Positions 3,040-58,354 of a stretch of 64,000 nt of DNA are shown here, piece after piece. How positions within the stretch are numbered: position 1 is the stretch's first letter; each line of letters opens with the position of its first letter. Source of the stretch: Callorhinchus milii (taxonomy: Eukaryota); contig NW_024704755.1 in the NCBI RefSeq assembly GCF_018977255.1, forward strand, positions 15,810,001 through 15,874,000, written 5' to 3'. Made by a program: the position numbers and the translations under genes. Below the pieces are notes generated by a model. That model had not been told where the DNA came from and did not search any database. It was given only the letters and a program-made list of their open reading frames with translations.

Positions 3040-6000
3040 ATGTTGGCGAGTGTTGCGTTTCAGTGTCTGTCTCTCATGTGGATCATTACTAAAGGTTTGT
3101 CCTTATTCAATATCCTAGTTTGCTGAAAAAAGACAAGGATAAAGTTCTTATTCTAGTTGCATCCATTCATATAGTCAACCGAGTCTCTATCTTGCCGAGT
3201 GTACCGAGTATCGGGTTTGTCTCTTTGTTGCAGGACTTTTGTCTCAAAACAATGTTTGAATTAATTTCTGACAGTTGCTGACGGGATGTCGATCCACGTA
3301 ACTCAACATCCCAAACACGTCGCTATCAATAGAGGTGAAAATGTGAAGTTCTCCTGCGCCTTGTCTTTCACCACGAGTTTGAGAATATACTGGTGGAAGC
3401 AGGGAGAGAGTGAATACCTGGCAGGTGATCACAAGAAAGTATTTGGTTTGGAAAATACAGGAAGCGCCTTCTTCAAGCTCCTGGATGCAGCTCTCCAAGA
3501 CTCTGGAATTTATTACTGTACAGTCGTGACTCAGGGAAATATAACAGTAGATGGAGCTGGATCACATTTAACTGTCTGTGGTAAGTGTCACTATATGGCA
3601 GAGATTGTAACTATTATTTTTACTAGAGCCATAGTTTACAGTTATATATCGCCTCTCATTGTTGGGAAAGCATCTTAAAATGTTTTATAAAGGCTGAGGG
3701 GCAACAGGAGCTGAGACCAAGCTGGGAGGGGAGAGAAGCCAAAAGGACAGTCAAAGAACTACAACTTCAGGAAGTATTTGAAAGGAGAGAGGGAATGGTG
3801 AAAAGGATTGATTTCGGGAAGGAATTGTGCAGCCACAGTGGGCGCTCTGTGCAGCCCCGGGCGAGGGAATAGCCGGTCGAGTCAGCTCTCACAAGACTGA
3901 AGATAGGGCGCAGTAAGAACATTTGAAATTAGATGTTTTATAGTACAATTGAGTGTTAGAAATAGTTTAAGCAGTGCCGTTTAAACCTTTACAACAAAAG
4001 AATATTTAGTTTCTCCCTATCTTCATCAATATATACTCAACAACACAACTACTACAACTTGCATTTATACAGCGCCCTTCACGAGGGGAAGTGCCCCAGA
4101 GCGCTTTATAGTGGGAGAGTCTGACCCTGAGCCAGGAGGAGAGAGAAAGGGGAGGTGACCGTAAGCGGGATGAAAAAGGAAAGTCTTTAGATGGGATTTG
4201 AAAGTGAGGAGGTTGTGGACAAGGCCGAGGGATTGAGAGAGAGAGTTCCAGACTTTGGGGTGTAGTGGCTGAAGGCATGGCCACTGATGGTGGAGCGGAG
4301 GGGGCAAGGGACGAACTGGAGGCCGGAGCCAGCTGAGCGGTGGCAGAGGGTGGTGATTAACTCATGCCTGTCTTACTCGAACCAAACATCCGTACCCACA
4401 TCTCACCAGTTCTGGCCAGGCTTCCCATCACCGATTGGATTGACTTCAAGATCTTCACACTCGTGTTCAAATCCCTTCACTCTTTGGCACCTCCTTTTAC
4501 CTCTCCTACCTCCTCACACCCCAATGCACCAACCGGCGCCTCCGCTCGATTGGCACCGACCTCTTGCTCATTCCTCTCACCTTCCGCCCCAATATCGATG
4601 TCAAGCTTTCAGCCACTACACTCCAAAACTCTGGAACACTCCCTTATTGCTTCCAAATTTTTACTGAGAACTGAAATGAGACTAACCAGCTGTTTTGTTC
4701 CTGGTTTATCTTTTGCACTTTTCTTGAAAAATGGCACTCCTTCTGGCACCCTTCAATCATCCGCACCCTATCAGTTTCCAACACATTTGGAAAATCATTG
4801 GTAGAGCCTCTACTGTCTCTTCACTGGTTTCCTCAACAATCTGGAATCCCATCAGAGACCTGTGACTTCTCAAGTTTATAGCAAAGAAGACAATTTGGCT
4901 CATATTGTCTATACTGAATCTTTGAAGTTCCTTTTAGGAATTTTTACAGTTCCCTTCTAAAAAGTAGTAACGATCATACAATGTGTCTCGACCACAGCAT
5001 CCGGCAGGACAATCTATATCCTAACACTCTGTGTGAAAAAAAAATCGTAAACTTCCTTATTTGCTCCTTTGCTAACTATCGTAATTTGAAGTCATCTAGT
5101 CACCGACTCTCTGACCAGAGGTTCATTATATCAAAACCCCTCATCACCTTAAAGACTGTAAACTTCACACGTGTCTGCATTAAATTTAATTTGTCATTTC
5201 TCTGCCCATTCAATGAATCTGTACATTCCCCCTGAAGTTGGATAGCATCTTCTTGCAATAACTGAATGCACCTTCTTCATTTTCCATATTTTTGTGTTTT
5301 CTGCAAACGTGAAAATTGTGCCTCTTACACCAGAATCCAGATCACATAAAAATGTCAAATTATTCTAGATTAGTGGGAAGTGACTCAAAAAGTTTTATTA
5401 ATAGCTGGTGAATTTGGTCAGTCGCTTCATGGCTATAGTGAGACATTTCTGTGCACAAAATTGTCTGCTGTGTTTGCTAGCAAATGCAGGCAACACTTTT
5501 TACAATAAAGCCTGCAAAGTGAATTGAGACGTGATCAGATGCTATATCAAAGATTTTTTATTGCAGTGCCCCCAATTGTACTGAAGCTTTCCTCTAATGC
5601 TCCTCAAAAAGATTCATCTCCATTTCTGACTCTCTTGTGTGAAACAACCGCATTTTATCCAGAGAATGTCACCTTCACTTGGTCTAAAAACAGCACCGAA
5701 ATTACAACTGGGATAATCACCACTAATCAATTGAATGCAGAGGGATTGTTTGAAGCTTCCAGCTGTATGGAGGAGACACAGTCTGTCCAGAATGGGACTG
5801 TTTATACCTGTCGGGTGTTTCACCTCAGCCTCCAGACTCCGGGAATTGGCAACTACACGGTTCACCTTCCCAACATAGGTAGGAATCCAATAATTGCAGT
5901 ATTAATTAGTGTTAACTGTATTTTACAAGAATATTTCCTTCTGTTAATTCACGTGAGAAATGGCAGCCATACAGTTTCATAATTTGCTTCATGTAAAAAC

Positions 6001-9000
6001 ATTCTACTTAAAATGAAGAATCTTTGAACGATAAGAAATGTTTAATGATTTTCTCGGTTGTGTCAGTGGGTAGGTTAGTTTTACTTTTTATTTTGCAGAA
6101 AGTTGATGCTACTGAAAAGTCCAAACTGGATCATGTGCTACACTGAAAATTATAAAGTGTACCACTCCTCAATCTAATCTATTTAATGATAACATGCCTG
6201 TTAAACGCTACCATGAGTAGCACACAGTCTACATCTTTACTCCATTGGCTCCCTCTCCTTCAGAGGATCCAGTTCAAGATTCTGGTCCTCACCTACAAAG
6301 CCTATGGCCTCGCCCCACCCTACCTCAGTGACTTCCTAACCCCCTACCAACCCACCCGTTCCCTCCGCTCAGCCGGCTCCGGCCTGCTCCACGTCCCCCC
6401 GACCCACCCGCCCCACCATTGGCGGGAGAGCCTCCAGCCACTCTGCCCCCATCTCTGGAATTCCGTCCCCAATCACTCCGCCTCGGCCCCTCCTTAGCCT
6501 CCTCAAGTCTTGCCTCAAAACCCTCCTCTTCGACCATGCCATCGGTCATCCCCCTTCCCCTCCCCTCCCTTCTCCCACCCTGACCCCAGCTCAGGTCTGA
6601 AATGCTACACATTGTCCAGTGCCTCCTGACGTGAAAGGGGCTATACTAATGTAATCTAGTTGTTATTGTTGTTGTTACTTTAAGCACTCCATGACACCTC
6701 CCTACGTGAAGGGGGACAGGTGGGGGGGGAATAATCCCTTCAGAAGATAATAATAATTTTGTCACTCAATCCACGACTGTTTATGGCACACTACTGGGTG
6801 CAATTGACTGCCGCATTTCGCCCCCAAATATAGAGCTAATTCACTTTACAATATATGCTGTAAAATGCTTTTAAACATCTCAACAATGTGATGAGGCACT
6901 ATATCAAATGCAATGATTATTATTATTGTTCTTATTACTATATCAAATGTTTCCCAATTCACACTGTGAATATCTATCTTCTCTTGTCATGTGGTTTGCC
7001 TCATGCATATAGAATCACATTCAACAGTCATCGTAGAATATTTGAACCATTGGTGTTGTAAAATAATATCACTTGCCCCTGGAAATATTAAAACCTTGGG
7101 TTTCAAAAGATTACCTTCTAATCTATGAGGAATCTGAGCACGACATCTATAATTTTCATCACATTTCCGATTTTTTATGAGTTAATATTTTGTCCCTGAA
7201 ATATATTTAATGCTCTGTCTGACCTGGTTTCACTGTGCTAACTATTGTTATTCCCAGATCACAGTCTCTGTTCATAGGCTTCATATAATTCTGTGTCAGC
7301 CTGGCGGAGTGCTGGCACACTCACCTCTGAGTCAGAACATTTTGAGTTCAAACCTCATTTGGGGACTTAGATTCACATAGTCTAAGTAAGATGACACTCC
7401 AATCCAGTGTTGCAGTGTTGCATTGTCAGAGGTGACATCCTTCGGATGAGAGATTAAACCAAGATCCCGTCTGCCTGTTCAAGTGGACGCTATCAATCCC
7501 ATGAAACTATCCAAAAAGAGAAGGAAGATTCTCTCTCCTGGTGGTCTGGCCAATAATCCCACAAATAAAAGTGTTCACTCACTGTTTGTGAGATATTATT
7601 GATGCAACTAGCTGCTGCGTTTCGCCCACAAAATATAGTCAAAAGACACTAAGGTATTACATCAAATGCAAGGACTATTATTTATTATTAATAATTGTGT
7701 TTTTCGTCAGAACTCAACCATATTTCGCCTGAAATCGGGAGTTAAACCTGAGGACTAATGACCCTGCAGCCCGTATCCCAATGTAATTTAGCGCACAATG
7801 TATGCAATATTTGACTCTGTTCAACGTCAATCATCACTTGTGCCCTGCCAACATGTTTCATTATCTGCAGTTGTCTCTCTATAAAATAATTAACTTTCTG
7901 TTTCATCTCTCTTATTCTACAGTAAATATAATCGAATATCTTAATTTCAATGGGTAAAACAAGTCACCTGAAACATCCATTATATGCCCAAAAATATACG
8001 GTTAATTCACGTTGCAATATATTCTGTGAGGCACTTTGAGACATCTTGGAGACATGATACGGTGCTATATCAAATACAAGGATTATTATTATTAATATAA
8101 TATATAGATTTTACTTAAAATGGATAAACAGAAAATCGTAATTTGTCCTGAAAACACTTTACTTTCTGGAGAATTGTGCAATTACTGAAATTGTAAACCA
8201 TTGCATCACAATGTGCAGTTTAACCTCTCATCTCCCAGTGTCCAGGCCAACAATCCCCCAAATAAAAGTGTTGTGTTTCACAACGACTGTAAGGCATTAC
8301 TGTGTGGAAACTGGCTGCTGTGTTTTGCCCAAAAATACACAATCCAACAGTTTACAGTATATCATGTGAAGTGCTTTGAGGCGCCTTGACGATGTGAAAA
8401 GACATTATGTTAAATGCAAGGATTATTATTTCATTATTATGATCTTATATTATTTTGATAGAAGAAAAGGATCGGTTGCTATATCTATCACTGATCGCTG
8501 GATGTACAGTGGGGCTGTTTTTTTTGGTGCTTTTAGTATTCTTTGGAAATCGATCCAAATTTATGAAAATGAAAGGTAAGAATCAATTTGTTTTGTTCTG
8601 ATTAATTCTGGATGCTTGATTTTGAGACATGTAAGTGTGCAAGTGCTATTGTCCTCCGTTGACACAGAAAGACGGTTTTGCATCGAAATATAGACCTAGA
8701 AGCTCTAGTTGCCCAATTGCTTTTTATTCTATAACATACATACACACATATACTCATTTATACACACACATACGCACATATACACACACACACATATATA
8801 TATACACACACATGTACACACACATATGCACGTATATATATATAAACACACACACATATCCACACACACACAAACACATAGATATATATACACACGCACG
8901 CACATACACATACACACATATATAGATACACATACATANNNNNNNNNNNNNNNNNNNNNNNNNNNNNNNNNNNNNNNNNNNNNNNNNNNNNNNNNNNNNN

Positions 9001-12000
9001 NNNNNNNNNNNNNNNNNNNNNNNNNNNNNNNNNNNNNNNNNNNNNNNNNNNNNNNNNNNNNNNNNNNNNNNNTATACGCATACACATATATGCTCACACA
9101 CACCTATGTATACACACATATACACACACATACATACATATATAGACACGCATATCNNNNNNNNNNNNNNNNNNNNNNNNNNNNNNNNNNNNNNNNNNNN
9201 NNNNNNNNNNNNNNNNNNNNNNNNNNNNNNNNNNNNNNNNNNNNNNNNNNNNNNNNNNNNNNNNNNNNNNNNNNNNNNNNNNNNNNNNNNNNNNNNNNNN
9301 NNNNNNNNNNNNNNNNCATACGCATATATAAACACACACATACACACATGTATACACACACACATAAATTGCTGGCAGGGTGAAACCTAAGGCAAATTTC
9401 CTTACTCCACATGCCTGATAATAAACCCTCAAGAAAAAAAATTATAAATTGGTCACTTCAATCCACGGCTGTTTGAAGGACACTGCTGTGCGCAATTGGC
9501 TGCAGTGTTTTGCCCACAAAACATACAGTCAATCACTTTACAATATATTCTGTGAATTGCTTTGAGATATCTAGAAGATGTGAAAAGCACTTTATCAAAT
9601 GCAAGGGTTATTATTATTATTATATTATTATTGTTTTCATTCTCAATTGGAGATTCAGTAAAAATGTCAGTTATTGTATTTCATTCATTTTAGGGGTACA
9701 CAGGAAACAGAATGATCCAGACCATCATAACCAACAGGTAACATACATCCCATGCATACCTAAAGGGTGATTGATAGCATTGAAAAGGATTGTGTTGTTT
9801 ATAATTATATGAGGATGTTTTCAAAATATTTCTTACCTGATTACCCGTTTCACTATGTCATTCAAATTGGGTTCACACCAATATGAGGCACCAAAGCAAT
9901 GCAGGTAACATAATAAACAAGCCAACCGGTCTTGAGAAAACATTCCCATACATTAGGGCAAAAGTTGAGAGTTTCAGTTTGTGATTTACAGGCAATGCAA
10001 GGAGGAGATGCTGAGACGGTGACTTATATCACACTGGATTTGAAAAGTTCCAATAAACTTTCAAGACCTAAACATCAGGAGGACAGGACAGTGTACGCCA
10101 AGGTACAGCTGAAAATATACAATTATATTATTCTAACCGTAATAAAGAGATTGAAGCCCATGTGTTCTGTTTTGGACACCTCACTTCAGGGAGGATGTTA
10201 AATCCTGCAGAGAAGATTTGTGAAGTGTGGTTTGTTTTCATTGGAGCGAGACTGTTCAGAGGGGATCTGATCAACATGCACCAAATTACAAATTATGTTA
10301 AAATCTGCCAAGAAGATGTGTGAGAATTATATAAGGAAGCTGGAGAAATCTGCTTCCATTGGAGCAAAGAAAGTTGTGAGGGGATCTGATAAAGGTGTAT
10401 CAAATTCGCAATGATTTTGACATGGTATGAAGAATGAAGCTATTCCCGCTGATAAGAGAGTCAGAAAATAGAGGACATGTATACGTTAGTCTAAAGAGCG
10501 AAAGGAAAGTTCAGCAGATTGTTTTCACACTGGGCCTTGTTTTGGTAAGGTAGTAAAAGCAGAGCCTATTGTGAGTTTCAATAAAGAAGTCGATAGGCCC
10601 ATGAATTATATACTGAACGGGGCCTCTAGTCCCCAAGACCTCAACAACTTATCCCAAATATTGTTCTTTATTCGTGAGCCTAGACAGTGCATGCAGCAAA
10701 TTAGGCTCCTCGATAGACATCACTACTTAATGGAAACAGTCTTACGCACCTCTTTCCGACAGACAATTGACGAATTGCACACTACCTGAGAGGTCCCCCC
10801 TCTCCATTCCCAGGCAAGGGATGTTGAGGTTATTTGCCTCGCTGCCTGGACAACTCTGGGAGGGAGCTGGGTACCTCTGGGTTCCTACAGATGGGTTTGG
10901 AACTGAACAGTTGTCTTTACAATTGAGCTATAGAAGAAACTATCAAAGAGATTCCAATGGTTATTTTTTTTTCTGTTTGAATTTTCGTATAAAGACTGAA
11001 TTCATTAAATTCCAATTCCGTGGCTTTTTTAGATCAAACAAAAGGCAGAAGATGATAAGCAGGTATATGCTACTTTGGAGTTTTCTGGCCCGGAGACAGT
11101 AGGAAAACCTAAGAAAAGCAACCCAAATATAGAGTATACCGCAGTGCAGGTGAGAAATCGCGAAGGACATTGGAGGGCGTTTACAGGAAACCAAAATCAA
11201 TGATATGTGGCAATGTTAGCTGCAGGAGCTGATTATTAGAGCAAAGTGATGGTAGGTTCTCTAACATATAAAGTAATATGGTAGGGCCTATACATGGTAG
11301 GAAACCTACCATCAGCCCCACTCCCACCCCACCACCTACACGCCACCACCCACCCCCACCACCACATACACGCGCATACACACACACACACACATCAATG
11401 AATGTTGAGTTCATTGCAGCTTTCTCCATATAAATTGGGGTTGGAGCCAGGTACATCTATGATACTTATAGCACTGAATAGTTGGCTTTATCAAGTGAGA
11501 TATGGGAATAAACAAGATGGAGATACGTATCAACAAGGGGCAGAAAACTCTAGTGGGAGTAGTTTATAGCCCCCCGAACAGCAGTCACAGTATCTCTCAA
11601 GGTATAAATCAGGAAATTAGCAGAGCACGTAGTAAAGGAAAAACATTAATTGTGGGTGATTTTAATCTGCACATAAATTGCGACAATCAAATTGGGAAAA
11701 ATATGATAGAAGAAGAGTTTATAGAATGTATTAGGGATAATTATCTGTATCAGTATGCCGAAGAACCAACCAAGGAACAGGCCATATTAGACCTTGTTTT
11801 GTGCAATGAAGCAGGGCTGATCAGCAAACTGGAAATTAAGGCTCCTCGAGGGCAAAGTGATCATAATATGATGGAATTTAGCATTAAGTTAAAGAGAGAA
11901 ATAGTTAAGTCCGAAGCAAAAGTTTTAAATTTAAGTAGAGCCAATTTTGCTGGTATGAGAAAGAATTTAGCCAAAATAAGTTAGACTAAAGGATTTGACA

Positions 12001-14314
12001 GTAGACCAGCAATGGCAGACGTTTAAGGAGATAGTGCAAAATCCCCAGCGAGCACGTATTCCTTTGAGGAATAAGAATGCCACGGGAAAGGTGGCCCAAC
12101 CGTGGCTAACTGGAGCAGTTAGGGAAAGTATAAAGTTAAAGGAAGAAGCCTATAAAACAGCTAAGATAAGTAGTAAACCCGAGGATTGGGAGAACTTTAG
12201 GGATCAACAAAGGAGAACCAAAAAAGTGATTAAGAGGGAGAAAATGGAATATGAGGGCAAACTAGCGAAGAACATAAAGACAGACTGTAAGAGTTTTTAC
12301 AAATATATAAAGAGGAAGAGGCTGTCAAGGGTAAATGTGGGTTCGCTACAGGCAGAGACGGGCGGAATTATAGTAGGGAACAAAGACATGACAGAGTCAT
12401 TAAACAAGTACTTTGCTACTGTCTTCACCTTAGAAGACACTGAAAACCTACCAAGAATAGAGGGGAACCAAGAAGACAATGTTAGCGAGCAACTTGGAGG
12501 AATTAATATTAGTAAAGAAATGGTTTTAGGTAAATTATCAGGTCTTAAAACTGATAAATCTCCTGGACCTGATGGCCTACATCCTAGGGTTTTAAAAGAG
12601 GTGGCTACTGAGATAGTGGATGGCTTGTCTTTGATCTTCCAAAATTCTCTGGATTCTGGAACGGTTCCCATTGATTGGAAGATTGCAAACGTAACACCAC
12701 TATTTAAGAAGGGTGGGAGAGAAAAGATGGGGAACTATAGACCAGTTAGTCTGACATCAGTAGTAGGGAAAATTCTTGAGTCCTTAATTAAAGATGTCGT
12801 TATGGGATTCCTGGAAGACCATAACAAGATTAGGCAGAGTCAACATGGCTTTACAAAAGGGAAGTCATGCTTAACTAATCTTTTAGAGTTTTTTGAAGAT
12901 GTATCTGCAGGTTAGATAGGGGAGAACCAGTAGATGTAGTATATTTAGATTTTAAAAAGGCATTTGACAAAGTGCCACACAAAAGGCTATTGCACAAGGT
13001 TAAGGCCCATGGGATTAATGGGAACATATTAGCATGGATTGAAGAGTGGCTAATGGGTAGAAAACAGAGAGTAGGGATAAACGGGTCATTCTCGAATTGG
13101 CAGGATGTGACTAGTGGAGTGCCACAAGGATCAGTGCTTGGGCCTCAGCTATTTACAATTTACATCAATGATCTAGACGAGGACATTGAATGTAACATAT
13201 CTAAATTCGCGGATGACACTAAACTCGGTGGGAGAGTAAGCTCTGAGGATGATGCAAAAAGATTGCAACGGGATATAGATAGGCGAGGGGAGTGGGCAAG
13301 TAGGTGACAGATGGAATTTAATATGGGAAAGTGTGAAGTTATTCAGCTAGGTAGCAAAAATAGGAAAACAGATTATTTTCTAGAGAGGGAGAGATTAGAT
13401 AGTGTTAGAGTGCAGAGGGATTTGGGTGTCCTTGTACACCAATCTCAAAAAGTTAGTTTGCAGGTGCAGCAGCAACTAAGAAGGCGAACGGCATGTTAGC
13501 ATTCATTGTAAAAGGTTTAGAGTACAAGAGTAGGGAAGTCTTGCTGCAATTGTATAGGGCCTTGGTGAGACCGCACCGAGAGTATTGTGTGCAGTTTTGG
13601 TTTCCTTATTTAAAAAAGGACATACTTGCCCTGGAGGGGGTGCAGAGTAGATTCATTCGGTTAGTTCCTGGGATGAGGGGATTGACCTATGAGGATAGGC
13701 TGAATAAACTAGGGCTGTATTCTCTAGAGTACAGAAGAATTAGGGGAGATCTTATTGAAACATATAAGATTCTTAAAGGGTGGAATAAAGTAGACACTGA
13801 GGGTTTGTTTCCCCTGGTAGGAGAATCTATAACCAGGGGTCACAGTCTTAAGATTAAGGGTCAGCCTTTTAGAACAGAGTTGAGGAAACATTTCTTCACT
13901 CAGAGGGTAGTGAATTTATGGAATTCACTCCCCCAGAAGTGTGTAGATGCTCAGTCCTTGAACATCTTCAAGGCTGAGACTGATAGATTTTTAAAAAATA
14001 GGGATTAGGGGATATGGGGATAGGGCAGGTAATAAGAGTGAGGTCTGAAGATTAGCCATGATCTTATCGAATGGCGGGGCACAGGCTCAAGGGGCCGAAT
14101 GGCCTACTCCTGCTCCTAATTCTTATGTTCTTATGTTCTTATATGGGTATTTTCAATGATATTTCTGATTTTTTTGCAAAGAGAGCAAACTAACTAAATT
14201 ACCAATCCTTGCCTGTTACAGACCATGCAAGGGGCAGCTGGTAACAACCTCACATATGCTACTCTTCATTTTTCTGACTCCAAGACAACACAAAAAATAT
14301 TCACCGTGAAGTAA
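3040..14314 (+). CDS. Gene 1: inhibitory-type V-C1-TM IgSF receptor with ITIM/ITSM tail (SIRP/NKp30/NITR-like architecture), about 383 aa as assembled
   Basis: Exons with canonical GT-AG and consistent phases: leader 3040-3094 ([18 protein letters not shown]), V 3275-3580 ([20 protein letters not shown]), C1 5567-5878 (C..FYPE..W..YTC), TM 8462-8575 ([33 protein letters not shown]), cyt1 9694-9737, cyt2 9992-10102 (VTYITL, TVYAK|I), cyt3 11033-11149 (QVYATL, IEYTAV), cyt4 14222-14337. Cyt4 keeps LTYATL but is 116 nt versus 117 in paralogs, giving TAA at 14312-14314. Confidence 0.85.
3275..3580 (+). CDS. Gene 1 V-type Ig exon (phase 1-1, J-like G strand)
   Basis: ttctgacag acceptor and TG|gtaagt donor; matches ORF 3286..3678; two Cys, [19 protein letters not shown]. 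Confidence 0.92.
4040..4650. mobile_element. Back-to-back L2 3' fragments in gene 1 V-C1 intron (4040-4345 minus, 4345-4650 plus)
   Basis: [32 protein letters not shown] on the plus strand; L2 tail on the minus strand. Confidence 0.75.
5567..5878 (+). CDS. Gene 1 C1-set Ig exon
   Basis: ttattgcag acceptor and TAG|gtagga donor; [21 protein letters not shown]; 312 nt. Confidence 0.92.
6225..6675 (+). mobile_element. L2 3' fragment; similar minus-strand fragments at about 32330-32610, 46480-46700 and 52365-52600
   Basis: [36 protein letters not shown] and tail GTGAAAGGGGCTATACTAATG(TTG)n. Confidence 0.8.
7295..7690 (+). mobile_element. Long Deu-domain-type SINE
   Basis: tRNA-like head, central CATTGTCAGAGGTGACATCCTTCGGATGAGAGATTAAACCAAGATCCCGTCTGCCTG segment resembling the Deu domain (recognised from memory), and (ATT)n tail. 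Confidence 0.65.
8735..9365. repeat. Compound (CA)/(TA) microsatellite with two N gaps (8939-9072, 9157-9317)
   Basis: Direct reading of the sequence. Confidence 0.95.
11525..14142 (+). mobile_element. 5'-truncated CR1/L3 LINE (ORF2 endonuclease C-part + RT) in gene 1 intron
   Basis: ORFs 11502-14008 contain [39 protein letters not shown]. Stops at 11982, 12913 and 13305 plus a frameshift. 3' tail (TTCTTATG)x3. Absent at the same site in genes 3 and 5. Confidence 0.95.
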
Positions 14315-14947: not shown

Positions 14948-15135
14948 GCTAATCAAGGGGCAGCTTAGCAGCTGACATATGATGCTTTAGAATTTTCTGC
15001 CTCCAAGAAAACAGGAAAATCTGAACACGATGACAAGAATACAGAGTAAGCCAAGTCATGGGCAAGAAAATCGAAAGGAGCAATAGAGGCCATCTTGATG
15101 AAACAGGATCCACAATGATATGTTTGGAAGCTGAT
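14948..15135 (+). pseudogene. Degenerate terminal cytoplasmic exon (cyt5) of gene 1
   Basis: Homologous to 38699-38902 and 58151-58354, but has TAG at 14966-14968, YAAL changed to YDAL, and the TEY tyrosine codon changed to TAA at 15047-15049. Confidence 0.85.
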
Positions 15136-21970: not shown

Positions 21971-21971
21971 A

Positions 21972-24858: not shown

Positions 24859-25316
24859 ATGTTGGCGAGTGTTGTGTTTCAGTGTCTGTCTCTCCTGTGG
24901 ATAATTTCTAAAGGTTTGTGCATATTCAATATCCAAGTGTTCGGAAAAAGAAAGTGTTTATCTCTTATAGTATTTTGTTTCAAAACAATGTTTGAATTTA
25001 TTTCTGACAGTTGCTGACGTTACGTTGATCCAAGTAATGCAACGACCCAAACACATCGCTATCAACAGAGGTGAAGATGTGACATTCTCCTGCAACTTCT
25101 CTCGCAACCAGAGAGTGAAAATTTACTGGTGGAAGCAGGGAGCGAGCGAATACATGGGAAGCAGTCACAAGAAAACATCTCACCTCGAAGCTTCTGAAAG
25201 AGCCACCCTCAAGCTCCTGGATGCAGAACTTCAGGATTCTGGAACCTATTACTGTACAATGGTGTTTCAGGGAAATATAACAGTAAATGGATCTGGATCA
25301 CATTTAACTGTATATG
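24859..25316 (+). CDS. Gene 2: orphan leader + intact V exon; no own C1/TM found
   Basis: Leader 24859-24913 and V 25011-25316 (open frame, ..DSGTYYCTMVFQGNITVNGSGSHLTVY) with intact splice sites and upstream promoter block. No C1 or TM homolog seen before gene 3. Confidence 0.8.
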
Positions 25317-32775: not shown

Positions 32776-32800
32776 NNNNNNNNNNNNNNNNNNNNNNNNN
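32776..32800. other. 25-N assembly gap
   Basis: The flanks (gatctatcaaca / ggaatggaca) are directly adjacent in the paralogs at about 46865 and 52755. Confidence 0.95.
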
Positions 32801-47125: not shown

Positions 47126-49826
47126 ATGTTGGCGAGTGTTGTGTTTCAGTGTCTGTCTCTCATGTGGATCATTCCTAAAGGTTTGTCCTTATCACAGTTT
47201 GCTGAAGAAGGACAAGGATAACGTTATTATTCTTGTCTTCCCGATTTGTAGAGTAAATCTCATCTCTAACTCACTCTGTGTTTATCTCTTTGTCGCAGTA
47301 CTTTTGTTTCAAAACAATGTTTGAATTTATTTCTGACAGTTGCTGACGGGACATCGATCCAAGTAACTCAACATCCCGAACACATCGCTATAAACACTGG
47401 TGAAAATGTGAAGTTCTCCTGTAACTTCCCCGACACCAGCATTATAACAACAAACTGGTGGAAGCAGGGAGAGAGTGAATACCTGAGAATTGATCACAAG
47501 AAACAATTTGGTCAGGAAAGTGCAGGAGAGGCTTCTCTCGAGCTCCTGGATGTGCGCCACCAGGATTCTGGAATCTATTACTGTGCAGCGGTGACTCCGG
47601 GAAAAACAACAGTAAATGGGACTGGGTCACATTTAACGGTATACGGTAAGTGTCGTTATAAGACTGAGAACTTAACTGTTATATATAATTGATCCGTCAT
47701 TTACATTCATGTAAATTAATTTAATCATTGTTGGGGGAGAATCTTAAAGCGCTTTACAAAGGCTGAGGGGCTGCCGGAGCTGAGACCGAGGTGGGAGGGG
47801 AGAGTGCCACAAGGACAGTCAAACTGGTGTGTCTTCAGGTGGGATTTGCGAGGAGAGAGGGAAGGGCGAGAAGGATAGATTTCGGGAAGGAAGTCTAGAC
47901 CTTCGGGTCAATACAAGAATATTCCCTGTGCACGAACGTTCCCTGAAACAAACACTCCGCTGACCAAAAATAACACTTTATAATAATTTATCATCTAAAA
48001 TATACTGGTTCTTATTATTCACCACAGTCTGTCGAGTGTAAGCTCAAACTCGTATGCATTACATTTCGTGTGCCATTTCTATGCCTAATCCACTCATCTG
48101 TCTACCTCTCGCTGAAGGCGCTTACAATCTTTTTGCAATAACCAAATGCAAGTTCTGCATTGTTATTTATTTTGTGAGTCTTGTAAACTTCGAAACTGTG
48201 CCCCATATACCATACTCTAGATCAAGTAATGTTGCGAAATATTATAGGTTAGTGGGAGTTGACTTAGAAAATTACACTAATAGCTGTTGAGTTTCATAAT
48301 TCACTTGATAGCTGTCGTGAGATATTATTGTGCACAAAATTGTCTGTCGCGTAGGAAAACAAATACACGCAATACACTTCATAGTTAAACCTGCGAAGCG
48401 ATTTGAGACGTGATAAAGCATTATATCAAAGGTTTTTATTGCAGTGCCCCCAATTCCTCTGAATATTTCGGACACAGAACCTCAAAGAGATCCTTCTGTG
48501 TTTCTGACTCTCGTGTGTAAAACGGCCGCGTTTTACCCGGAAAATCTCACCTTCACATGGTTTAAAAACGGCACAGAAATTACAACTGGGATACATACCA
48601 TTAAACGACAGAACACTGAGGGACTGTTTGAAGCTTCCAGCTCTGTGGAGGAGACACAGTCTGTCCAGAATGGGACAGTTTATACCTGTTGTGTGTCTCA
48701 CATCAGCCTCCAGACTCCGGGAATTCGCAACTACACCATTTGCACGGTTTACCTTCCTGACAAAGGTAGGAATACAGCAGTCTCAGTGTCAATTAGCGTT
48801 AACTGTCTTCACAAGAAAATTTTCTTCTTTTAATTCACACCGTGAACGACAGCCATATAATTTCCTTCATGTAAAATATAAACCACTTTCACCTTTTAAT
48901 GCATAACATTTGAATTGTTATGAATGCAAAGTATCACTTGCCCTTGAAAATATTCACAATTCAAATTTCAAACCTTTCATTTACAATATATTGTATTCAA
49001 GAATGCGAGTATGAAATATGAATTTCCACTCAATTTCTTAATTATTAGTAGATATTATGTCCTCTCTGTTTCCCCTCAGACCTGTCTTCAATATCGCCAT
49101 TATGTTAAATAACTTTTTTAAAATTATCTGCTCTCAGGCTTTTTACAATGACTCTTTTGTTCAAACTCAGTTCCCTGATCCCTGTGGAGCGGCATTGAGA
49201 CAGGAAGATATCTGTGCCGATGATGGTGCTCAGGAAACCTTGTTTCACCTTATAATGGCGCAGCACATTGGAGCGTTTTGACCCGCGATTACAGTTTGGC
49301 TGCACTTGGGAACTTTTAATAGATGTCTCTATCTAAATCCGTCTCCCTGCAAAATAACTGGCACCGATCTCCATACTGATAATAAATATATTCACCCACA
49401 AAATATAGAATCAATTCACTTTACAGTATATTCTGTGATGCGCTTTCGGAATTCTCGAAGAGTTGATGAGGCGCTAATATCAAATTCAAGGGTCAATATT
49501 ATCACTTACATTATTAGTTGAATCAGTGCAAAGGTTCGTTTTAACATATATTACAGGGAGTTGATGCTACTGAAAAGTTCAACATTAACCATGCGCAAAT
49601 ACTGTTCTGCACTGAATCCTAAATTGTTCCGCTCCTCAGTGTAGTCCATTTAATGGCAAAATTGTAGTTGAAAGAGATTATCTCACAACTCTCATTATTC
49701 TGTGTTTCCTCAGTAAAATTTAACGCACTCAGATATATTGAAATGTTTCGGTTTGGATTCAGCGCGGTGATAATATTACTCGTGGTCGTCTTCCTTGTGG
49801 ATTATTTCAAAATTAATCCTCTTTAA
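47126..49826 (+). CDS. Gene 4: activating-type V-C1-TM(Arg) receptor with very short tail, about 264 aa
   Basis: Leader 47126-47180, V 47340-47645, C1 48445-48765. TM exon 49714-49828 (tgtttcctcag acceptor, phase 1) reads VKFNALRYIEMFRFGFSAVIILLVVVFLVDYFKINPL*, with TAA at 49824-49826 and then AG|gtaag. Candidate 3' exon from 50243. Confidence 0.8.
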
Positions 49827-53016: not shown

Positions 53017-56000
53017 ATGTTGGCGAGTGTTGTGTTTCAGTGTCTGTCTCTCATGTGGATCATTCCTAAAGGTTTGTCCTTATTCAATGTCACAGTTTTC
53101 TCAAAAGAACAACTTACTCTGTGTTTATCTCTTTGTCGCAGTACGTTTTTTCAAAACAATATTTGAATTTATTTCTGACAGTTGCTGACGGGACATCGAT
53201 CCAAGTAAATCAACATCCAGAACACATCGGTATAAACACTGGTGAAAATGTGAAGTTGTCCTGTAACTTCTCCGACACCAAGATTATAAAAACAAAGTGG
53301 TGGAAGCAGGGAGAGAGTGAATACCTGACAAATGATCACAAGAAACAAACTGGTCACGATAGTGCAGGAGAGGCTTCTCTCGAGCTCCTGGATGTGCGCC
53401 ACCAGGATTCTGGAATCTATTACTGTGCAGCGGTGACTCCGGGAAATACAACAGTAAATGGGACTGGATCACATTTAACGGTATATGGTAAGTGTCGTTA
53501 TGACACTGAGAACTTAACTATTATATATATTCGATCCGTCATTTACATTCACGTAAAGTCTATCATTTTTGGGGAAGAATCTTAAAGCGCTTTACGAAGG
53601 CTGAGGGCTGCCGGAGCTGAGACCGAGCTGGGAGGGGAGAGTGGCCACAAGGAGAATCAAACTGGTGTGTCTTAAGGTGGGATTTGCGAGGAGAGAGGGA
53701 AGGGCGAGAAAAATGAGTTTCGGGAAAGAATTCTAGAACTTCGGGTCAACACCGCTGAACATTCCCTACGCAGACACCGCGCTGACCAAAAATAAAACTT
53801 GAGAATAATTTACCATCTAAAATATACTTGTTCTCCTTATTATTCACCATAAGCTGTAGACTGTAACCTCATATTCGTATGCATTGCATTTCGTGTGCCA
53901 TATCTCAGCCCAATCAACTAATCTATATTCGTCGCGCTGAAGGCGCTTACAATCTTTTTGCAATGACTAAGTGCAAATTTTTCATAGTTAGCTATTTTGT
54001 GATTCTTGTTAACTTGGAAATTGTGTGCCTTATAACCTGATCCAGATCATACATAAATGTCCAATATTATAGGTTAGTGGGAGCTGACTTTGACTGTTGC
54101 ATTGATAGCTGGTGAGTTTCATCGCTCACTTTAGAGGTACCGTGAAATATTTTTGTGCACAAAATTGCCCGTCACGGACGACAACACATACACGCAATAC
54201 ACTCCACAGTTAATCCTGCGGAACGAGTTGAGACGTGATAAAGCATTATATCAAAGGTTTTTATTGCAGTGCCCCCAATGCTTCTGAATATTTCGTACAA
54301 AGGACATCAAAGCGATCAATCTGTGATTCCGACTCTCGTGTGTGAAACGGCGGCGTTTTACCCCGAGAATCTCACCTTCACATGGTTTAAAGATGGTACA
54401 GAAATTACAACTGCGATAAATACCACTGAACGACAGAACGCGGAGGGACTGTATGAAGCTTCCAGCTCTGTGGAGAAGACACAGTCTGTCCAGAAGGGGA
54501 CAGTTTATACCTGTCGGGTGTCTCACATCAGCCTCCAGACTCCAGGAGTTCGCAACTTCACGGTATACCTTTCTGACAAAGGTAGGAATCCAACGGTGTC
54601 AGTGTTAATTAGCGTTAACCGTCTTTCACAAGAATATTTCCCTCTTTTAATTCAAACCGCGAACGTTAGCCATATAATTTACTTCATATAAAATATATAT
54701 CACTTTCACCTTTTAATGGATAACATTTGCCATTGAAAATATTAACAATTCAGATTTCAAATCTCTAATTTCCGATATATTGTAACCAATAATGCGAGTA
54801 TGAAATATGAATTTCCACCCCATTTCTTAATTATGAGTTGCTTAATGTCCCTTTTGTTTCCCTCAGACCTGTCTTCAATATCGCCATTATATCAACAATT
54901 TTAGTGAAATTATCTACTCTCAGGCTTTTCACAGTGATGCTTTTGTTCAAACTCAGTTCCCTGATCCCTGTGGAGCGGCAGTGAGACAGGAAGATATCTG
55001 TGCCGATGATGGTGATCAGGAAACCTTGTTTCACCTTATAATGGCGCAGCACATTGGAGTGTTTTGACCCGCGATTACAGTTTGGCTGCACTTGGGAACC
55101 TTTAATAGATGTCTCTATCTACAGCTGTCTCCCTGCAAAATAACTGCCACCGATCTCCTCACTGATTATAAATATATTCACCCATTTTTATTATTATTCC
55201 CTGGAGGTTTCATTGTCTACAGTTTTCTCTCCACAAAATAATAAACTTGTTTTCTCATCTCCCTTACATTTCAGTCAAAAATAATCGAATACTTTATTTT
55301 AATCCGATGGCGATGCAGGAGAAAAGTGAGATAAGACACCCCGGTCTCCATTTTTTATACATTGTTCTTCAATGGAAAAACATGACATCGTAATTTGTCC
55401 TAAAGCACTTTTTTTCAGGAAGATTGTGTAATTCCTGAAACTGTAAACCATTCGATCACAATGTGCAGTTTCACCCCTCATCTCCCGGTGTTCAGACCAA
55501 CAATCCCCCAAAACAAATGGCAAAGTACTCCAGATGCTGGAAATCTGAAGACAAATACAGAAGTCGCTGGGAACCCTCAGGCAGCGTCTGTGGAGAAAGG
55601 AAAGTGAGTCCAGTTCTGAGGAAGGGTCGTGGATCCGAAACGTTGACTCACTTTCCTTTCACCACAGACGCTGCCTGAGGGTTCCCAGCGCTTCTGTTAT
55701 TGTCCCCAAATCAAACTGTTGGCTGTGGGGCATTGCTGTGCAAATATTGGCTGCTGCGATCGCACAAAAATACAGAATTACAACATTTTACAGCACATCT
55801 CACGCTTTGAGACGCCTTGACAATGTGATAAGACGTGATATCAAATATATGGATCATTATATCATTATTATGATCTTATCTGTTGTGGAATAATCTCACT
55901 TTCACTTTCTATAGAATCGTTGCAAGTTCTGATGCTATGTACTTTACTGATTGTTGGATCTGTAGTGGGGCTGGCATGTTTGCTGCTTTTGGTATACTTT

Positions 56001-58354
56001 CGAAAGCGATCCAAATTAAAGAAAAAGAAAGGTAAGAATCAAATTATTTTGTTCCAGTTAATAATGAACGCTTGATTTTAGTACATGTAAGTGTGCAAGT
56101 GCTTGAGAGACTGTTTTTCATGGAAAAATCAACCTAGAAACTCTGGGGGTTCAATTGTTTTTCACTCTTTTCATTCTCCATTGGAGATTCAGTAAAAAAT
56201 TCAGTTATTGTATTTCATTCATTTTAGGGATACAAAGGAAACAGAATGATTCGGATCATCGTAGCCAGCAGGTAATAACTATCCCAAGCAGTGTTTCATA
56301 CCTAAAGGGTGATCGACAACATTGAACAGGATTGTGTTGTTTATAATTATATGAGGCTGTTTCTAAAATATTCCTTGCCTTATTGATGGCTTCACTATGT
56401 CATTGAAATTGGCTTCACACCAATAAGAGACAACAATGCAACACAGGCGACATAATATACAGGGCAAACAGTCTTGAGAAAACATTCCCATACATAAAGA
56501 AAAACGTTGAGAGTTGCAGTTTGTGATTTACAGGAAATGCAAAGAGGAGATGCTGAGAAGGTCACTTATATCACATTGGATTTGAAAGGTGCCAATAAAC
56601 TTTCAAGACCGAAACATCAAGAACACAAGAAAGGTTACGCAAAGGTACAGCTGAAAAGCATTACATCGACACATAGAATCATATTATCCTAACTGTCGTA
56701 GATAGATTGAAGCTCACGTGCTCTGTTTGGGGCACCTCACTTCAGGGAGGATGTTAATTGCCGCAGAGAAGATTTGCAAAGCGTGGTTTTTGTTCATTGG
56801 AGCTCGACAGTCGAGAGGGGATCTAATGAAAGTTTACCAAATTAGTAATGATTCTGACAGTGTATATAGAAAGAAACTACTCTTTGTTAAGGGAATCAGC
56901 AAATAGAGGACATGTATAAGATTGTCACAAGGAGCGAAACGAAGATTTAGCAGATTTTTTTCACACGAGGAGTTGTTTCGGTAAGGTGGTAGAAGTAGAT
57001 TCTATCATGAGTTTCAAGAGGAAAGTTGATGAAAGAGGATACATGAAATATATGCTTAACTGGCCTCCAGTTCGATTATACAGAACACCACAAACTTTTT
57101 TTTATTCGTGAGCCTTGACAGTGAGTGCAGCAAAATGGGCTACTCAATAGAGATCATGGTAGATTGGAAACTGCCCATGATTTCCACCCCCACACACTCC
57201 TTCAGCCACCCCCATACACACATCAATGGAGGATAAGTTTAATTACAGCTGTCAATCATGGATGGAGCCAGGTACATCTATAAAGCTTATGGCACGGAAC
57301 AGGTTTTATCAATTGTGCTATGGGAATAAACAAAGCGGAGCATCATATCGGTGTTTTCTATGATGTTTCTAAACTTTTTGCATAGAGAGTGAACTAACTA
57401 AATTAACAATCCTTCTCTTTCACAGACCAAGCAAGGGGTAGCCAGTAACAACCAGACGTATGCTACTCTTGATTTTTCTGACTCCAAGACAACACAAAAA
57501 ATGAATCGCAGTGTCGTAAATACAATGTATGCCGAGACACAGGTGAGGACGTACAGCAGATTAATCTAAAGGAAACTAAGACCTAATCACACAATTTTAC
57601 AAACCAATTCTTAGTATATTGGTTTATTCTCTGTCATAGACACACAGACCACTCTCAATAATATTGTTTTGCTAGTCCATCATCATTATTCCCAGAGGAA
57701 ACTACAGTTCAAGAATCATACAACCATGCCAGAGAAGAGAAATAGACCATTCTTCCCAAACCAAGCTGCGTGAATTTTTTTCAGACCAATTAACCCAATT
57801 TAAAACTTCCATTTGTTGCACAATTCATACAGATTTATCCTCTTTAAGAATTTGTCCTTCCTTTTTCTTGCTTAACATAGAATTCAAATTTCTTGCCCTT
57901 CCTTTGCATAAAATATTTTTCTACCACCAATCCTTCAATTTTCAATTTCCATGACTATCTTAAATTTATTCCCTCTACTAACTCATTGCTGTGTTTTTCT
58001 CCACAAAACCAAGTAAATGTAATTCTCCTCCTTGCTTCACAACCTCATGCCTTAACCTTTACCTGGAACTATACGTAGAAAACTGTCAGTAGTTTTTCAA
58101 AGTTGGACAAATGGATAAGCTAACAACGTTACCAAACATTGGCTTTACAGGGCAAGCAAGAGGCATCCGCTAACAAGCTGACATACGCTGCTTTAGAATT
58201 TTCTGCCTCCAAGAAAACAGGAAAACCTAAATACAATGACAAGAATACAGAGTATACCAAGATACCGGTGAGAAAACAGAAAGGAGCAATAGAGGCCATC
58301 TCGGTGGAACAGGATGCATATAATATTACAATAATAAGTTCAAAAGCTGAATAG
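53017..58354 (+). CDS. Gene 5: intact inhibitory-type V-C1-TM-ITIM/ITSM receptor, about 421 aa
   Basis: Leader 53017-53071, V 53182-53487, C1 54270-54581, TM 55915-56031 (ESLQVLMLCTLLIVGSVVGLACLLLLVYFRKRSK), cyt1 56228-56271, cyt2 56534-56644 (VTYITL), cyt4 57426-57542, cyt5 58151-58354 (LTYAAL, TEYTKI). Total 1266 nt open. The cyt3 exon is absent. Confidence 0.88.
55558..55696 (+). mobile_element. Penelope-derived hairpin insertion with hammerhead core in its loop (gene 5 C1-TM intron); homolog at 35547-35700 in gene 3
   Basis: Arms 55558-55610 and 55645-55696 are near-perfect inverted repeats; loop 55611-55644 contains CTGAGGA..GAAACGTT. Absent at the equivalent gene 1 site (about 8255). 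Confidence 0.75.

Follow-up and report, generated by a model that had tools for sequence, protein, structure and literature searches.

This locus raises the question of whether a cluster of similar V-domain genes in Callorhinchus milii constitutes a family of paired activating and inhibitory receptors and, if so, to which known family it is closest. The stretch analysed, referred to here as the window, comprises 64,000 nucleotides of contig NW_024704755.1 (positions 15,810,001 to 15,874,000, assembly GCF_018977255.1). With a probability of roughly 0.6, it contains part of a cluster, formed by tandem duplication, of non-rearranging VJ-C1 immunoglobulin superfamily (IgSF) receptors, belonging to a family that is distributed throughout the cartilaginous fishes, shares ancestry with the SIRPs, and most likely works as they do.

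Organisation of the array

The plus strand of the window carries five paralogs, g1 to g5, which extend from the g1 start codon at 3040 to the g5 stop codon at 58354 and, as the first-pass annotation had recognised, have their leader and V exons in common. The leader exon is 55 nt long, and the VJ domain is encoded by a single exon of 306 nt (Table 1). The five V exons match the family V profile with E values between 1e-26 and 3e-42, and a profile search of both strands of the window found no further V or C1 exons. In the exon models, splice sites follow the AG/GT rule and phases match, and the full-length layout consists of a leader split by a short intron (97-180 bp across the array), one VJ exon, one C1 exon, a transmembrane (TM) exon and then one of two ends. 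In the germline, V and J form one exon with no V/J split, and the G-x-G..L VJ motif is invariant among the 21 family members compared. In Pfam, the V-set model is covered end to end (1-108 of 109 positions in g1, and 2-109 or 3-109 in the others), with both V-set and C1-set matches above gathering scores. A C1-set exon is present in four of the five paralogs (g1, g3, g4 and g5). The ectodomain originally proposed for the array is a compact one of one V and one C1 domain; g1, g4 and g5 each have a complete reading frame and intact splice sites, g2 retains only its leader and V exons, and in g3 both domains are disrupted.

The inhibitory end, found in g1, g5 and the pseudogene g3, comprises a small cytoplasmic exon (exon X) and three or four paralogous tail exons with pairs of tyrosine motifs approximately 23 residues apart. 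The multi-tyrosine tails previously attributed to these three genes were borne out, with canonical ITIM/ITSM counts of four in g1, six in g3 and three in g5. The activating end of g4 instead uses a different TM exon, present as a single copy in the window, in which an Arg near the outer leaflet is soon followed by a stop codon; its translation finishes with EMFRFGFSAVIILLVVVFLVDYFKINPL. This agrees with the earlier description of g4 as having a TM Arg and no signalling tail.

Individual genes differ in their state of preservation. The inhibitory gene g1 is intact, encoding 383 aa, with a tail of duplicated exons that each specify an ITIM/ITSM-like tyrosine pair. It was already predicted by NCBI, and 360 of 361 residues match XP_007902894.1. 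Its tail is cut early by the 1-nt deletion in exon C, and a LINE has inserted in the tail region. The other intact inhibitory gene, g5 (421 aa), likewise has a tail of duplicated tyrosine-pair exons, lacking exon B and with several degenerate motifs. The activating-type g4 (264 aa) is also intact, and has a membrane-proximal Cys, as does g3. No C1, TM or tail exon was found after the V exon of g2 in the window, while g3 is a pseudogene with four disabling lesions: its V exon has lost 14 nt and its donor site, and single nucleotides are deleted at two places in its C1 exon. The g3 lesions, the truncation of g2, the early end of the g1 tail and exon X were all missing from the first-pass annotation.

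Table 1. Exons of the five array genes, in window coordinates.
Gene	Feature	Coordinates	Strand	Remarks
g1	Leader exon	3040..3094	+	18 aa, phase 1
g1	VJ exon	3275..3580	+	V-set with NGxGSHLTV J-like strand
g1	C1-set exon	5567..5878	+	
g1	TM exon	8462..8575	+	Uncharged TM, inhibitory type; matches XP_007902894.1
g1	Cytoplasmic exon X	9694..9737	+	15 aa
g1	Tail exon A	9992..10102	+	VTYITL ITIM and TVYAK|I ITSM
g1	Tail exon B	11033..11149	+	QVYATL and IEYTAV
g1	Tail exon C	14222..14314	+	LTYATL; 1-nt deletion leading to stop at 14312-14314
g1	Tail exon D, decayed remnant	14948..15150 (approximate)	+	TAT>TAA, deletions
g2	Leader exon	24859..24913	+	
g2	VJ exon, intact	25011..25316	+	
g3	Leader exon	33050..33104	+	
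g3	VJ exon, disrupted	33271..33562	+	14-nt deletion loses WWK codons (including invariant Trp) and shifts frame; donor GT>AT
g3	C1 exon, disrupted	34333..34651	+	Two 1-nt deletions
g3	TM exon, intact	35884..35994	+	
g3	Exon X	36207..36250	+	
g3	Tail exon A	36512..36622	+	
g3	Tail exon B	37454..37570	+	
g3	Tail exon C	37979..38095	+	
g3	Tail exon D with stop	38699..38902	+	
g4	Leader exon	47126..47180	+	
g4	VJ exon	47340..47645	+	
g4	C1 exon	48445..48765	+	9-nt insertion giving extra membrane-proximal Cys
g4	Activating-type TM exon	49714..49826	+	Arg near outer TM end; 8-residue tail; stop 49824-49826
g5	Leader exon	53017..53071	+	
g5	VJ exon	53182..53487	+	
g5	C1 exon	54270..54581	+	
g5	TM exon	55915..56031	+	
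g5	Exon X	56228..56271	+	
g5	Tail exon A	56534..56644	+	VTYITL
g5	Tail exon C	57426..57542	+	Degenerate motifs
g5	Tail exon D with stop	58151..58354	+	LTYAAL and TEYTKI

No exon is touched by an assembly gap, and no reading frame depends on one. Two gaps (8939-9072 and 9157-9316) interrupt a CA/TA microsatellite in the g1 intron that separates the TM exon from exon X, across which the coding sequence agrees with the NCBI model. A third, at 32776-32800, lies approximately 250 bp upstream of the g3 start codon; its flanks abut exactly in the paralogous sequences of g4 (46876/46877) and g5 (52767/52768), and identity to these paralogs jumps from approximately 79% to 97% exactly at the gap. Therefore the contig join at this position could be chimeric.

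Pairing and turnover

The activating-type and inhibitory-type genes have closely similar ectodomains. The V domains of g4 and g5 are identical at 89 of 102 residues, as first reported, and g4 is a mosaic, with a V like that of g5 and a C1 like that of g3. In the V exon, its identity is 92-94% with g5 and 87-89% with g3, whereas in the V-C1 intron and C1 exon it is 96-98% with g3 and 76-90% with g5; the C1 comparison with g3 alone likewise gives 96-98% nucleotide identity. In the ectodomain tree, g4 is sister to g5 (SH-aLRT 99), and activating and inhibitory forms are intermingled, such that the activating label requires at least six changes. This intermingling, together with the mosaic structure of g4, is the behaviour of paired receptors.

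Of the 13 V differences between g4 and g5, seven are at residues 31-39 and 50-51 (CDR1- and CDR2-like in our reading), three at 57-60, and one at 89, near a CDR3-like loop; the underlying changes are 15 nonsynonymous and three synonymous. The dN/dS of V exons is high (0.6-1.4 overall, and 0.6-0.85 among older pairs). A pseudogene (g3), a truncated copy (g2) and a variable number of tail exons are signs of birth-and-death evolution. With similar ectodomains on opposite signalling ends in addition, the proposal of a paired-receptor family in a cartilaginous fish stands at the level of sequence.

The wider family includes approximately 70 V-C1 members, and all 16 of the family-type top matches whose names were checked are chondrichthyan, from nine species. 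Both types of end are conserved, with the family itself, in chimaeras, sharks and rays. Besides g4, the Arg-TM exon is shared by another C. milii gene and by Scyliorhinus, Carcharodon, Mustelus, Heptranchias and Heterodontus, with the Arg aligned in seven of eight such exon sequences from chimaera to sharks.

Relationship to known receptors

The evidence points to the SIRPs as the closest known family to the array. When the family profile was searched against 1.84 billion proteins, the best non-chondrichthyan single-pass matches were the SIRP-alpha proteins of bat, birds and turtle, aligning from C1 through the TM and tail. In BLASTP, g5 matches SIRP-alpha both from V-C1 to D1-D2 (E 1e-15), and from C1-TM-tail to D3-TM-tail (E 6e-11). 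The whole family profile aligns with SIRP-alpha colinearly from leader to C-terminus, with a gap for D3 (hhalign, 99.5% probability, E 3.4e-23), and a tail-only profile (95%, E 4e-8) aligns all four SIRP-alpha tyrosines in the same order and with the same spacing. SIRP-alpha (2wng) is also among the top PDB matches, and the NCBI pipeline names many members 'SIRP-alpha-like' or 'SIRP-beta-1-like'. In both families, an N-terminal V domain that includes a J-like G-x-G-x-x-L-x-V strand precedes one or more C1-set domains; the tail of an inhibitory member has two [I/L]TYAxL ... (T/S)EYAxxQ tyrosine pairs, approximately 23-24 residues apart, that align one to one; an activating member combines a basic TM residue with a very short tail; and the genes are clustered and encode closely similar ectodomains. 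However, the tail of the array receptors is lengthened by exon duplication, with up to four tyrosine-pair modules, and their leader intron is short. We found no published description of the family, and take the array to be a SIRP-like, two-domain variant, auto-annotated before, whose function we infer.

Resemblances extend to other systems. NITR and NKp30 have VJ-type V domains, and these receptors, like KIR, LILR/PIR and CD300, combine ITIM-bearing inhibitory forms with charged-TM activating forms in tandem arrays subject to birth-and-death; yet the membrane-proximal domain of the array genes is a true C1-set, and none of NITR, KIR, LILR/PIR, CD300 or NKp30/NCR3 is among the named top matches of the family profile. 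Ig light chains and TCRs have a similar V(J)-C1 ectodomain, a split leader with a short intron, and, as in g3 and g4, a membrane-proximal Cys, but the array shows no sign of rearrangement, and its products would signal through an ITIM tail of their own or through a lone Arg in the TM. The non-rearranging UrIg and UrIg2 of elasmobranchs also combine a split leader and germline-joined VJ exon with C1-set domains, although the array genes are multigene, paired and limited to a single C1. UrIg occurs solely as a secreted form, with three C1-type domains, while UrIg2 has nine in nurse shark and eleven in epaulette shark, with no ITIM tail or activating/inhibitory pair described for either (PMC12227049). 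PRARP genes, which come from birds, reptiles and fish, may be another candidate comparison, going by the citation of Fu et al. 2019 in PMC10751288.

Alternative explanations

It is possible, though we consider it doubtful, that the array represents a chondrichthyan-specific VJ-C1 lineage with no special kinship to the SIRPs, drawn independently from the Ig/TCR/UrIg gene pool and still paired in its inhibitory and activating forms, whose tail came to resemble that of SIRP-alpha through convergent evolution of SHP-binding tyrosine pairs. Taken by themselves, the V and C1 domains are no closer to SIRP than to Ig light chain or UrIg2: the C1 profile scores 49.6 bits against Ig-lambda C, 48.3 against UrIg2 C3 (42-48 across UrIg2 C1 and C3), 43 against SIRP D3 and 37 against D2, and the V profile approximately 16 against SIRP V and 15 against a partial Ig-lambda V. 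The top PDB match of the ectodomain is UrIg2 (9dmx), the best Foldseek structural matches are Ig light chains, and the best 60 PDB matches of the V profile include no SIRP D1 structure; however, the sheer abundance of antibody entries, together with scores summed across multiple domains, biases these rankings. The short split-leader intron and VJ-C1-TM layout resemble those of an antigen-receptor chain, there is one C1 domain where SIRPs have two, and the activating TM, with its Arg near the outer end, has no similarity to that of mammalian SIRP-beta, with its central Lys. A 2026 survey additionally places the origin of the SIRP family in Tetrapoda (PMC13262535). The tail match involves short, functionally constrained motifs and could be convergent. 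Against this alternative stand the colinear alignment with SIRP-alpha, the equal order and spacing of all four tyrosines, and the rank of SIRP-alpha proteins as the best non-chondrichthyan receptor matches in the whole-library search.

That the array is mostly a decaying remnant, its pairing lacking a present function in C. milii, seems unlikely. The lesions of g3, the loss of all exons after V in g2, the premature stop and LINE insertion of g1, the eroded g5 tail and the V-exon dN/dS could all be read in this way, but pseudogenes and high V dN/dS are normal in birth-and-death immune receptor clusters, g1, g4 and g5 have intact coding structures, NCBI predicts g1, and the family is conserved with both its ends across chimaeras, sharks and rays. 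Less probable still, and already disfavoured, is membership in one of the families after which several members are automatically named in NCBI and UniProt: tapasin-related protein, B7-H6 (NCR3LG1), CD276, Ig lambda light chain or MHC class II beta. Each of these has a C1-set or V-set domain, but the names are mutually inconsistent inside one tight family, and therefore reflect generic Ig-domain similarity. Rearranging light chains are ruled out by the germline-joined VJ exon, and Pfam found no peptide-binding or tapasin N-terminal domain in the array genes. To our knowledge, none of the five has such a multi-ITIM tail or Arg-TM alternative.

Predicted function and origin

With SIRP ancestry as the preferred reading, ligand binding, the recruitment of phosphatases and adaptors, and the expressing cell types are predictions from sequence. 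The V domain would bind a ligand, for which CD47 may be a candidate. In the inhibitory type, Src kinases would phosphorylate the tyrosines of the ITIM/ITSM pairs and thereby recruit the tandem-SH2 phosphatases SHP-1/SHP-2, damping activation, whereas in the activating type the TM Arg would pair with an Asp-bearing ITAM adaptor of the FcR-gamma, DAP12 or CD3-zeta type, activating the cell. Recombination or gene conversion may keep the ectodomains of the two types similar, while the array would turn over through duplication and decay, as in g2, g3 and the g1 tail. As inhibitory SIRP-alpha-like tails and an activating-type anchor are found in one array, this brake-and-accelerator receptor design probably predates the split between chimaeras and sharks.

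Organisation of the receptor array

Searches of the window by tblastn with V and C1 translations located V exons at five places and C1 exons at four, always on the + strand, and a six-frame hmmsearch with the family profiles found no further V or C1 exon on either strand of it. These exons belong to tandem paralogs, g1 to g5, between which the 5' flanks are strongly conserved in an alignment of upstream regions. Hence all five genes with a common leader and V exon in the first-pass annotation were located at their expected places. The single V plus single C1 ectodomain it ascribed to them holds for g1, g4 and g5, with both the V and the C1 of g3 disrupted, but does not extend to g2, which has a V domain only. 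Each gene begins with a 55-nt, phase 1 leader exon, followed by an intron of 97-180 bp and a 306-nt V exon preceded by an acceptor, and exon boundaries are AG/GT with compatible phases throughout the gene models. The signal peptide is interrupted by this very short intron, with the last few leader residues encoded on the V exon, a split-leader layout as described for antigen-receptor V genes and UrIg2.

The intact inhibitory-type genes are g1 and g5. The former consists of leader, V, C1 and transmembrane (TM) exons, a small cytoplasmic exon X (44 nt), and the tyrosine-motif tail exons A, B and C, encoding a product of 383 aa; of the 361 residues compared with NCBI XP_007902894.1 (Callorhinchus milii LOC103185939), 360 are identical. 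Exon C of g1 acquires a stop through a 1-nt deletion, and exon D of this gene is decayed. Two alternative structures were discarded: a g1 tail lacking exon X, with the exon A acceptor 14 nt upstream, was dropped on comparison with XP_007902894.1, and a stalk exon between C1 and TM, suggested by conserved blocks at 7855-8262 and their paralogs, was rejected for want of conserved splice sites and because C1 is spliced straight to TM in the NCBI model of g1. The 421 aa product of g5 is encoded by leader, V, C1, TM, X, A, C and D, exon B being missing. In g4, leader, V and C1 are followed by a distinct terminal exon, encoding VKFNALRYIEMFRFGFSAVIILLVVVFLVDYFKINPL and then a stop, to give 264 aa. 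The full inhibitory-type exon set is found in g3, but this gene is broken: a 14-nt deletion takes out the Trp codons of the V domain with a resulting frameshift, GATGAG replaces GGTAAG at the V donor, and the C1 exon has two single-base deletions, while the TM and tail exons remain open. Lastly, g2 comprises a leader and an intact V exon alone, with neither a C1 nor a TM exon found for it in the window by tblastn or six-frame hmmsearch. A candidate TM exon downstream of g2 was rejected as a (TTA)n / TGTTATTAT low-complexity tract, which yields long hydrophobic pseudo-ORFs. Self-comparison reveals three duplicated units in the window, in each of which a short gene comes after an inhibitory one, namely g1 with g2, g3 with g4, and a third opened by g5.

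Features of the receptor array, with repeats and assembly gaps
Feature	Position	Strand	Detail
Leader ATGs, g1-g5	3040, 24859, 33050, 47126, 53017	+	upstream-region alignment
Leader introns, g1-g5	3095-3274, 24914-25010, 33105-33270, 47181-47339, 53072-53181	+	
Stop in g1 exon C	14312-14314	+	
C1 exon, g3	34333-34651	+	
C1 exon, g4	48445-48765	+	
Terminal exon, g4	49714-49826	+	
End of g5	58354	+	
LINE-type remnants	11502-14008; 21370-22202	+; -	endonuclease-RT and RVT_1 domains
SINE-like repeats	16302-16632; 21967-22300		
SINE-like partial copies (examples)	6730-6937; 9367-9633; 40090-40379		
SINE-like partial copy (example)	24012-24319	-	
tRNA-Ala(TGC)-like heads	16307-16377; 21970-22043		ARAGORN
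Low-complexity tract	31496-31800		downstream of g2
Two assembly gaps	8939-9316		CA/TA microsatellite
Gap of 25 N	32776-32800		

No exon or frame depends on an assembly gap. Two gaps fall in the g1 intron between the TM exon and exon X, and the coding sequence spanning them agrees with the NCBI model. The 25-N gap lies about 250 bp upstream of the g3 ATG, and in both the g4 unit (46876/46877) and the g5 unit (52767/52768) its two flanks align to adjoining bases. Compared with these units, the g3 upstream region is about 79% identical to the left of this gap and 97% identical to its right, a step that marks a boundary of gene conversion or else a contig join of chimeric origin; in the second case, g3 could combine two different copies.

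Repeats are also present in the array. The LINE-type retrotransposon remnant at 11502-14008 occupies part of the intron separating tail exons B and C of g1, adjoining the truncated exon C. The SINE-like family includes about 15 partial copies besides the two main ones, which start with a tRNA-Ala(TGC)-like head and are 93% identical.

Inhibitory-type and activating-type ends

Tail exons B, C and D, each 117 nt long and in phase 0, are paralogs of one another and related to exon A, and each of these exons encodes an xxLTYAxLxFSxSKKxxKPxxxxxNTEYxxIQ-like sequence, with two tyrosines about 23 residues apart. Canonical ITIM/ITSM motifs number four in g1 (VTYITL, TVYAKI, IEYTAV and LTYATL), three in g5 (VTYITL, LTYAAL and TEYTKI), where some others are degenerate, and six in the open tail exons of g3. 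The four core tyrosines vary hardly or not at all among the tails of 11 family members from several species. By analogy with SIRP-alpha and other ITIM/ITSM receptors, the tyrosine pairs of g1 and g5, once phosphorylated, would recruit SHP-1/SHP-2 and thereby inhibit the cell.

Within the array, the other type of end is restricted to g4, with blastn (word size 7) and tblastn detecting no paralog of its Arg-TM exon in the window. Outside the window, a second C. milii protein, XP_007902896.1, ends ...AISRFTLSMLLILFLAIIIVDHFRKNPL, and proteins of Scyliorhinus (two species), Carcharodon, Mustelus, Heptranchias and Heterodontus end xRFxLxFLVILxLxxIIV(D/E/V)H(F/L/V)K.... The TM Arg is aligned in seven of eight sequences, with Gln in the other, and is positioned about three residues into the hydrophobic span, with a tail of 5-17 residues across the family. 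The retention of this exon in the second C. milii protein and in sharks therefore makes it a conserved and ancient feature of the family. The Arg of g4 may pair with an acidic residue of an ITAM adaptor, by analogy with known receptors, and so mediate activation. A TM Arg placed close to the outer end is more typical of receptors coupled to FcR-gamma than to DAP12; a word-index search for a shark adaptor, using an approximate FcR-gamma query, returned matches from tetrapods only.

Probable exchange of ectodomains between putative paired receptors

Ig-like receptors in inhibitory and activating pairs are well documented for mammals, birds, frogs and bony fish. The array has the sequence-level attributes of this class, in that closely similar ectodomains are shared by ITIM-tailed genes and by those ending in a charged TM with a short tail, and the genes are clustered in a multigene family undergoing gain, loss and pseudogenisation, as exemplified by the g3 pseudogene and truncated g2. 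The V domains of g4 and g5 are identical at 89 of 102 residues, reproducing the first-pass value. Of the 13 differences, seven are at residues 31-39 and 50-51, which can be read as CDR1- and CDR2-like, three at 57-60, and one at residue 89, near the CDR3-like loop; the underlying changes are 15 nonsynonymous and three synonymous. In sliding comparisons, the g4 V exon is 92-94% identical to that of g5 and 87-89% to that of g3, whereas for the nucleotides of the V-C1 intron and C1 exon the identity is 76-90% to g5 and 96-98% to g3. Hence g4 is a mosaic of a g5-like V and a g3-like C1.

The same pattern extends beyond the window. When 66 family ectodomains are placed in a maximum-likelihood tree with SIRP-alpha as root, the activating-type g4 is sister to the inhibitory-type g5 (SH-aLRT 99), and several other nodes join activating with inhibitory forms. 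At least six changes of the activating label are required on this tree, although the Arg-TM exon is clearly of single origin, which is the pattern expected from repeated exchange of ectodomains between gene types. At the level of sequence, ectodomain similarity, the tree and the turnover of the array therefore support the original interpretation of these genes as paired activating and inhibitory receptors. Its constituent parts were confirmed, with some amendment: g4 does have a basic TM residue and an eight-residue tail, and so a TM Arg without a signalling tail, and multiple ITIM/ITSM motifs were counted in g1, g3 and g5, but g3 is broken and the g1 tail is shortened.

Relationship to SIRP, UrIg and immunoglobulins

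The V exon encodes the canonical Cys, a WWKQG Trp, DSGxYYC and a J-like NG(T/A/S)GSHLTV strand, the last of these in all five copies, and G94, G96 and L99 are invariant across 21 family members. As V and J-like strand are unbroken within 306 nt, this is a germline-joined VJ exon. The Pfam V-set model is matched end to end (1-108 of 109 in g1, and 2-109 or 3-109 in g2, g4 and g5), the second domain is assigned to the Pfam C1-set, and both exceed their gathering scores. A 9-nt insertion common to the C1 exons of g4 and g3 adds Ile-Cys-Thr in the membrane-proximal stalk (NYTICTVYLPDK), and both have a second Cys beside the canonical one (YTCCV). The unpaired stalk Cys could join two chains into a dimer through a disulfide, as happens with Ig light chains and TCR chains.

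The best-scoring single-pass proteins from outside the chondrichthyans are SIRP-alpha proteins from a bat (504 aa), from corvid birds (502 aa) and from a turtle, which match the family profile in one run from C1 through TM and tail. By BLASTP, g5 aligns to bat SIRP-alpha twice, with V-C1 against D1-D2 (E 1e-15) and C1-TM-tail against D3-TM-tail (E 6e-11), where D1 is the SIRP V domain, and D2 and D3 its two C1-set domains. The hhalign comparison of the family profile with SIRP-alpha (99.5% probability, E 3.4e-23) is colinear from leader to C-terminus, leaving D3 as an unmatched insertion. Profiles of the tail only match those of bat and bird SIRP-alpha (95%, E 4e-8), with all four SIRP-alpha tail tyrosines, arranged as two ITIM-like pairs, aligning to the four core tyrosines of the family. 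A further shared character is the N-terminal V-set domain with a J-like G-x-G-T/S-x-L-x-V strand in a single exon. By contrast, SIRP has a V and two C1-set domains, whereas the array genes have at most one C1 exon each. The family member P0034 (493 aa) has two near-identical tandem C1 domains (V-C1-C1) before its TM and ITIM tail, meaning that recent duplication of the C1 exon, the step needed for the three-domain SIRP layout, does occur in this family. For the activating partner, SIRP-beta combines a basic TM residue (Lys) with a short tail and DAP12; g4 likewise has a basic TM residue and a tail of only eight residues, but its residue is an Arg placed close to the outer end of the TM, and no similarity was found between the g4 TM and that of a bat SIRP-beta-1-like protein.

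Taken singly, the Ig domains show no preference for SIRP. The C1 profile scores Ig-lambda C at 49.6 bits and UrIg2 C3 at 48.3 bits, slightly ahead of SIRP D3 (43) and D2 (37), and the V profile gives equally low scores to SIRP V (about 16 bits) and a partial Ig-lambda V (15 bits). In the PDB the ectodomain matches UrIg2 (9dmx) best, with Ig chains and SIRP-alpha 2wng next in rank. PDB profile searches with V and with C1 separately were dominated by multi-domain proteins and antibodies, and so do not discriminate; Foldseek with the g4 model (pLDDT 73) retrieved only Fab light chains. The UrIg type shares with the array a single-exon VJ without an RSS split, a split leader and a C1-set domain following. 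However, UrIg has three C1-type domains and is secreted only, and UrIg2 has nine or more, in contrast to the one C1 and TM of the array genes. Orthology to either was rejected given this single C1, the TM, and the ITIM tails or Arg-TM; both have been described as non-rearranging VJ and multi-C1 genes of elasmobranchs, rather than paired ITIM/Arg receptors (PMC12227049; PMC10751288). Ancestry shared with SIRP is probable, chiefly on the basis of architecture and tail, and the family, which lacks the three-domain layout, is classified as SIRP-like. We propose that the array genes are a two-domain SIRP-like variant, with SIRP their relative. The stronger hypothesis, that they represent the SIRP lineage in cartilaginous fish and retain its ancestral two-domain form (VJ-C1-TM), is tentative, with a probability of roughly 0.3; a 2026 survey assigned the SIRP family a tetrapod origin (PMC13262535).

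Distribution and annotation

The family profile matches 174 proteins at E<=1e-30 among 1.84 billion representatives, about 70 of which have the single V-C1 layout. All 16 family-type top matches for which names were looked up are chondrichthyan (Callorhinchus, Heptranchias, Heterodontus, Scyliorhinus, two species of Mobula, Hemitrygon, Hypanus and Narcine). In C. milii, two more members are about 240-290 kb apart on one 18.1-Mb scaffold, and loci extending 10 kb either side of members in Heterodontus and C. milii contain family genes only. The family is already in public automatic annotation, under names as inconsistent as SIRP-alpha-like, SIRP-beta-1-like, tapasin-related, Ig-lambda-like, NCR3LG1-like, CD276 homolog and MHC II beta-like, which a curated family definition would fix. 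Two NCBI models appear chimeric: P0006 (XP_007902822.1) fuses the leader and V of g2 to a frame-shifted C1 exon that is absent after g2 in the window, and in P0001 (XP_007904055.1) tail exons C and D of the g5 type are continued by the V exon from a gene further downstream, implying a sixth gene beyond the window. No published description of a chondrichthyan V-C1 paired family was found, weak evidence of absence given incomplete coverage of subscription journals.

Implications

The oldest living lineage of jawed vertebrates combines a four-tyrosine tail resembling that of SIRP-alpha with a conserved Arg-TM partner and a VJ-C1 ectodomain like that of a light chain. Were these genes to belong to the SIRP lineage, the origin of its "brake and accelerator" would shift from tetrapods to the base of the jawed vertebrates, the paired design would be more than 400 million years old, and an anciently conserved Arg-TM exon would have been repeatedly recombined onto inhibitory-type ectodomains. 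The array represents a concrete system for asking how old SHP-coupled "self" checkpoint signalling is, how activating partners arise and go on tracking inhibitory ones, and what form membrane-bound VJ-C1 genes took near the origin of antigen receptors.
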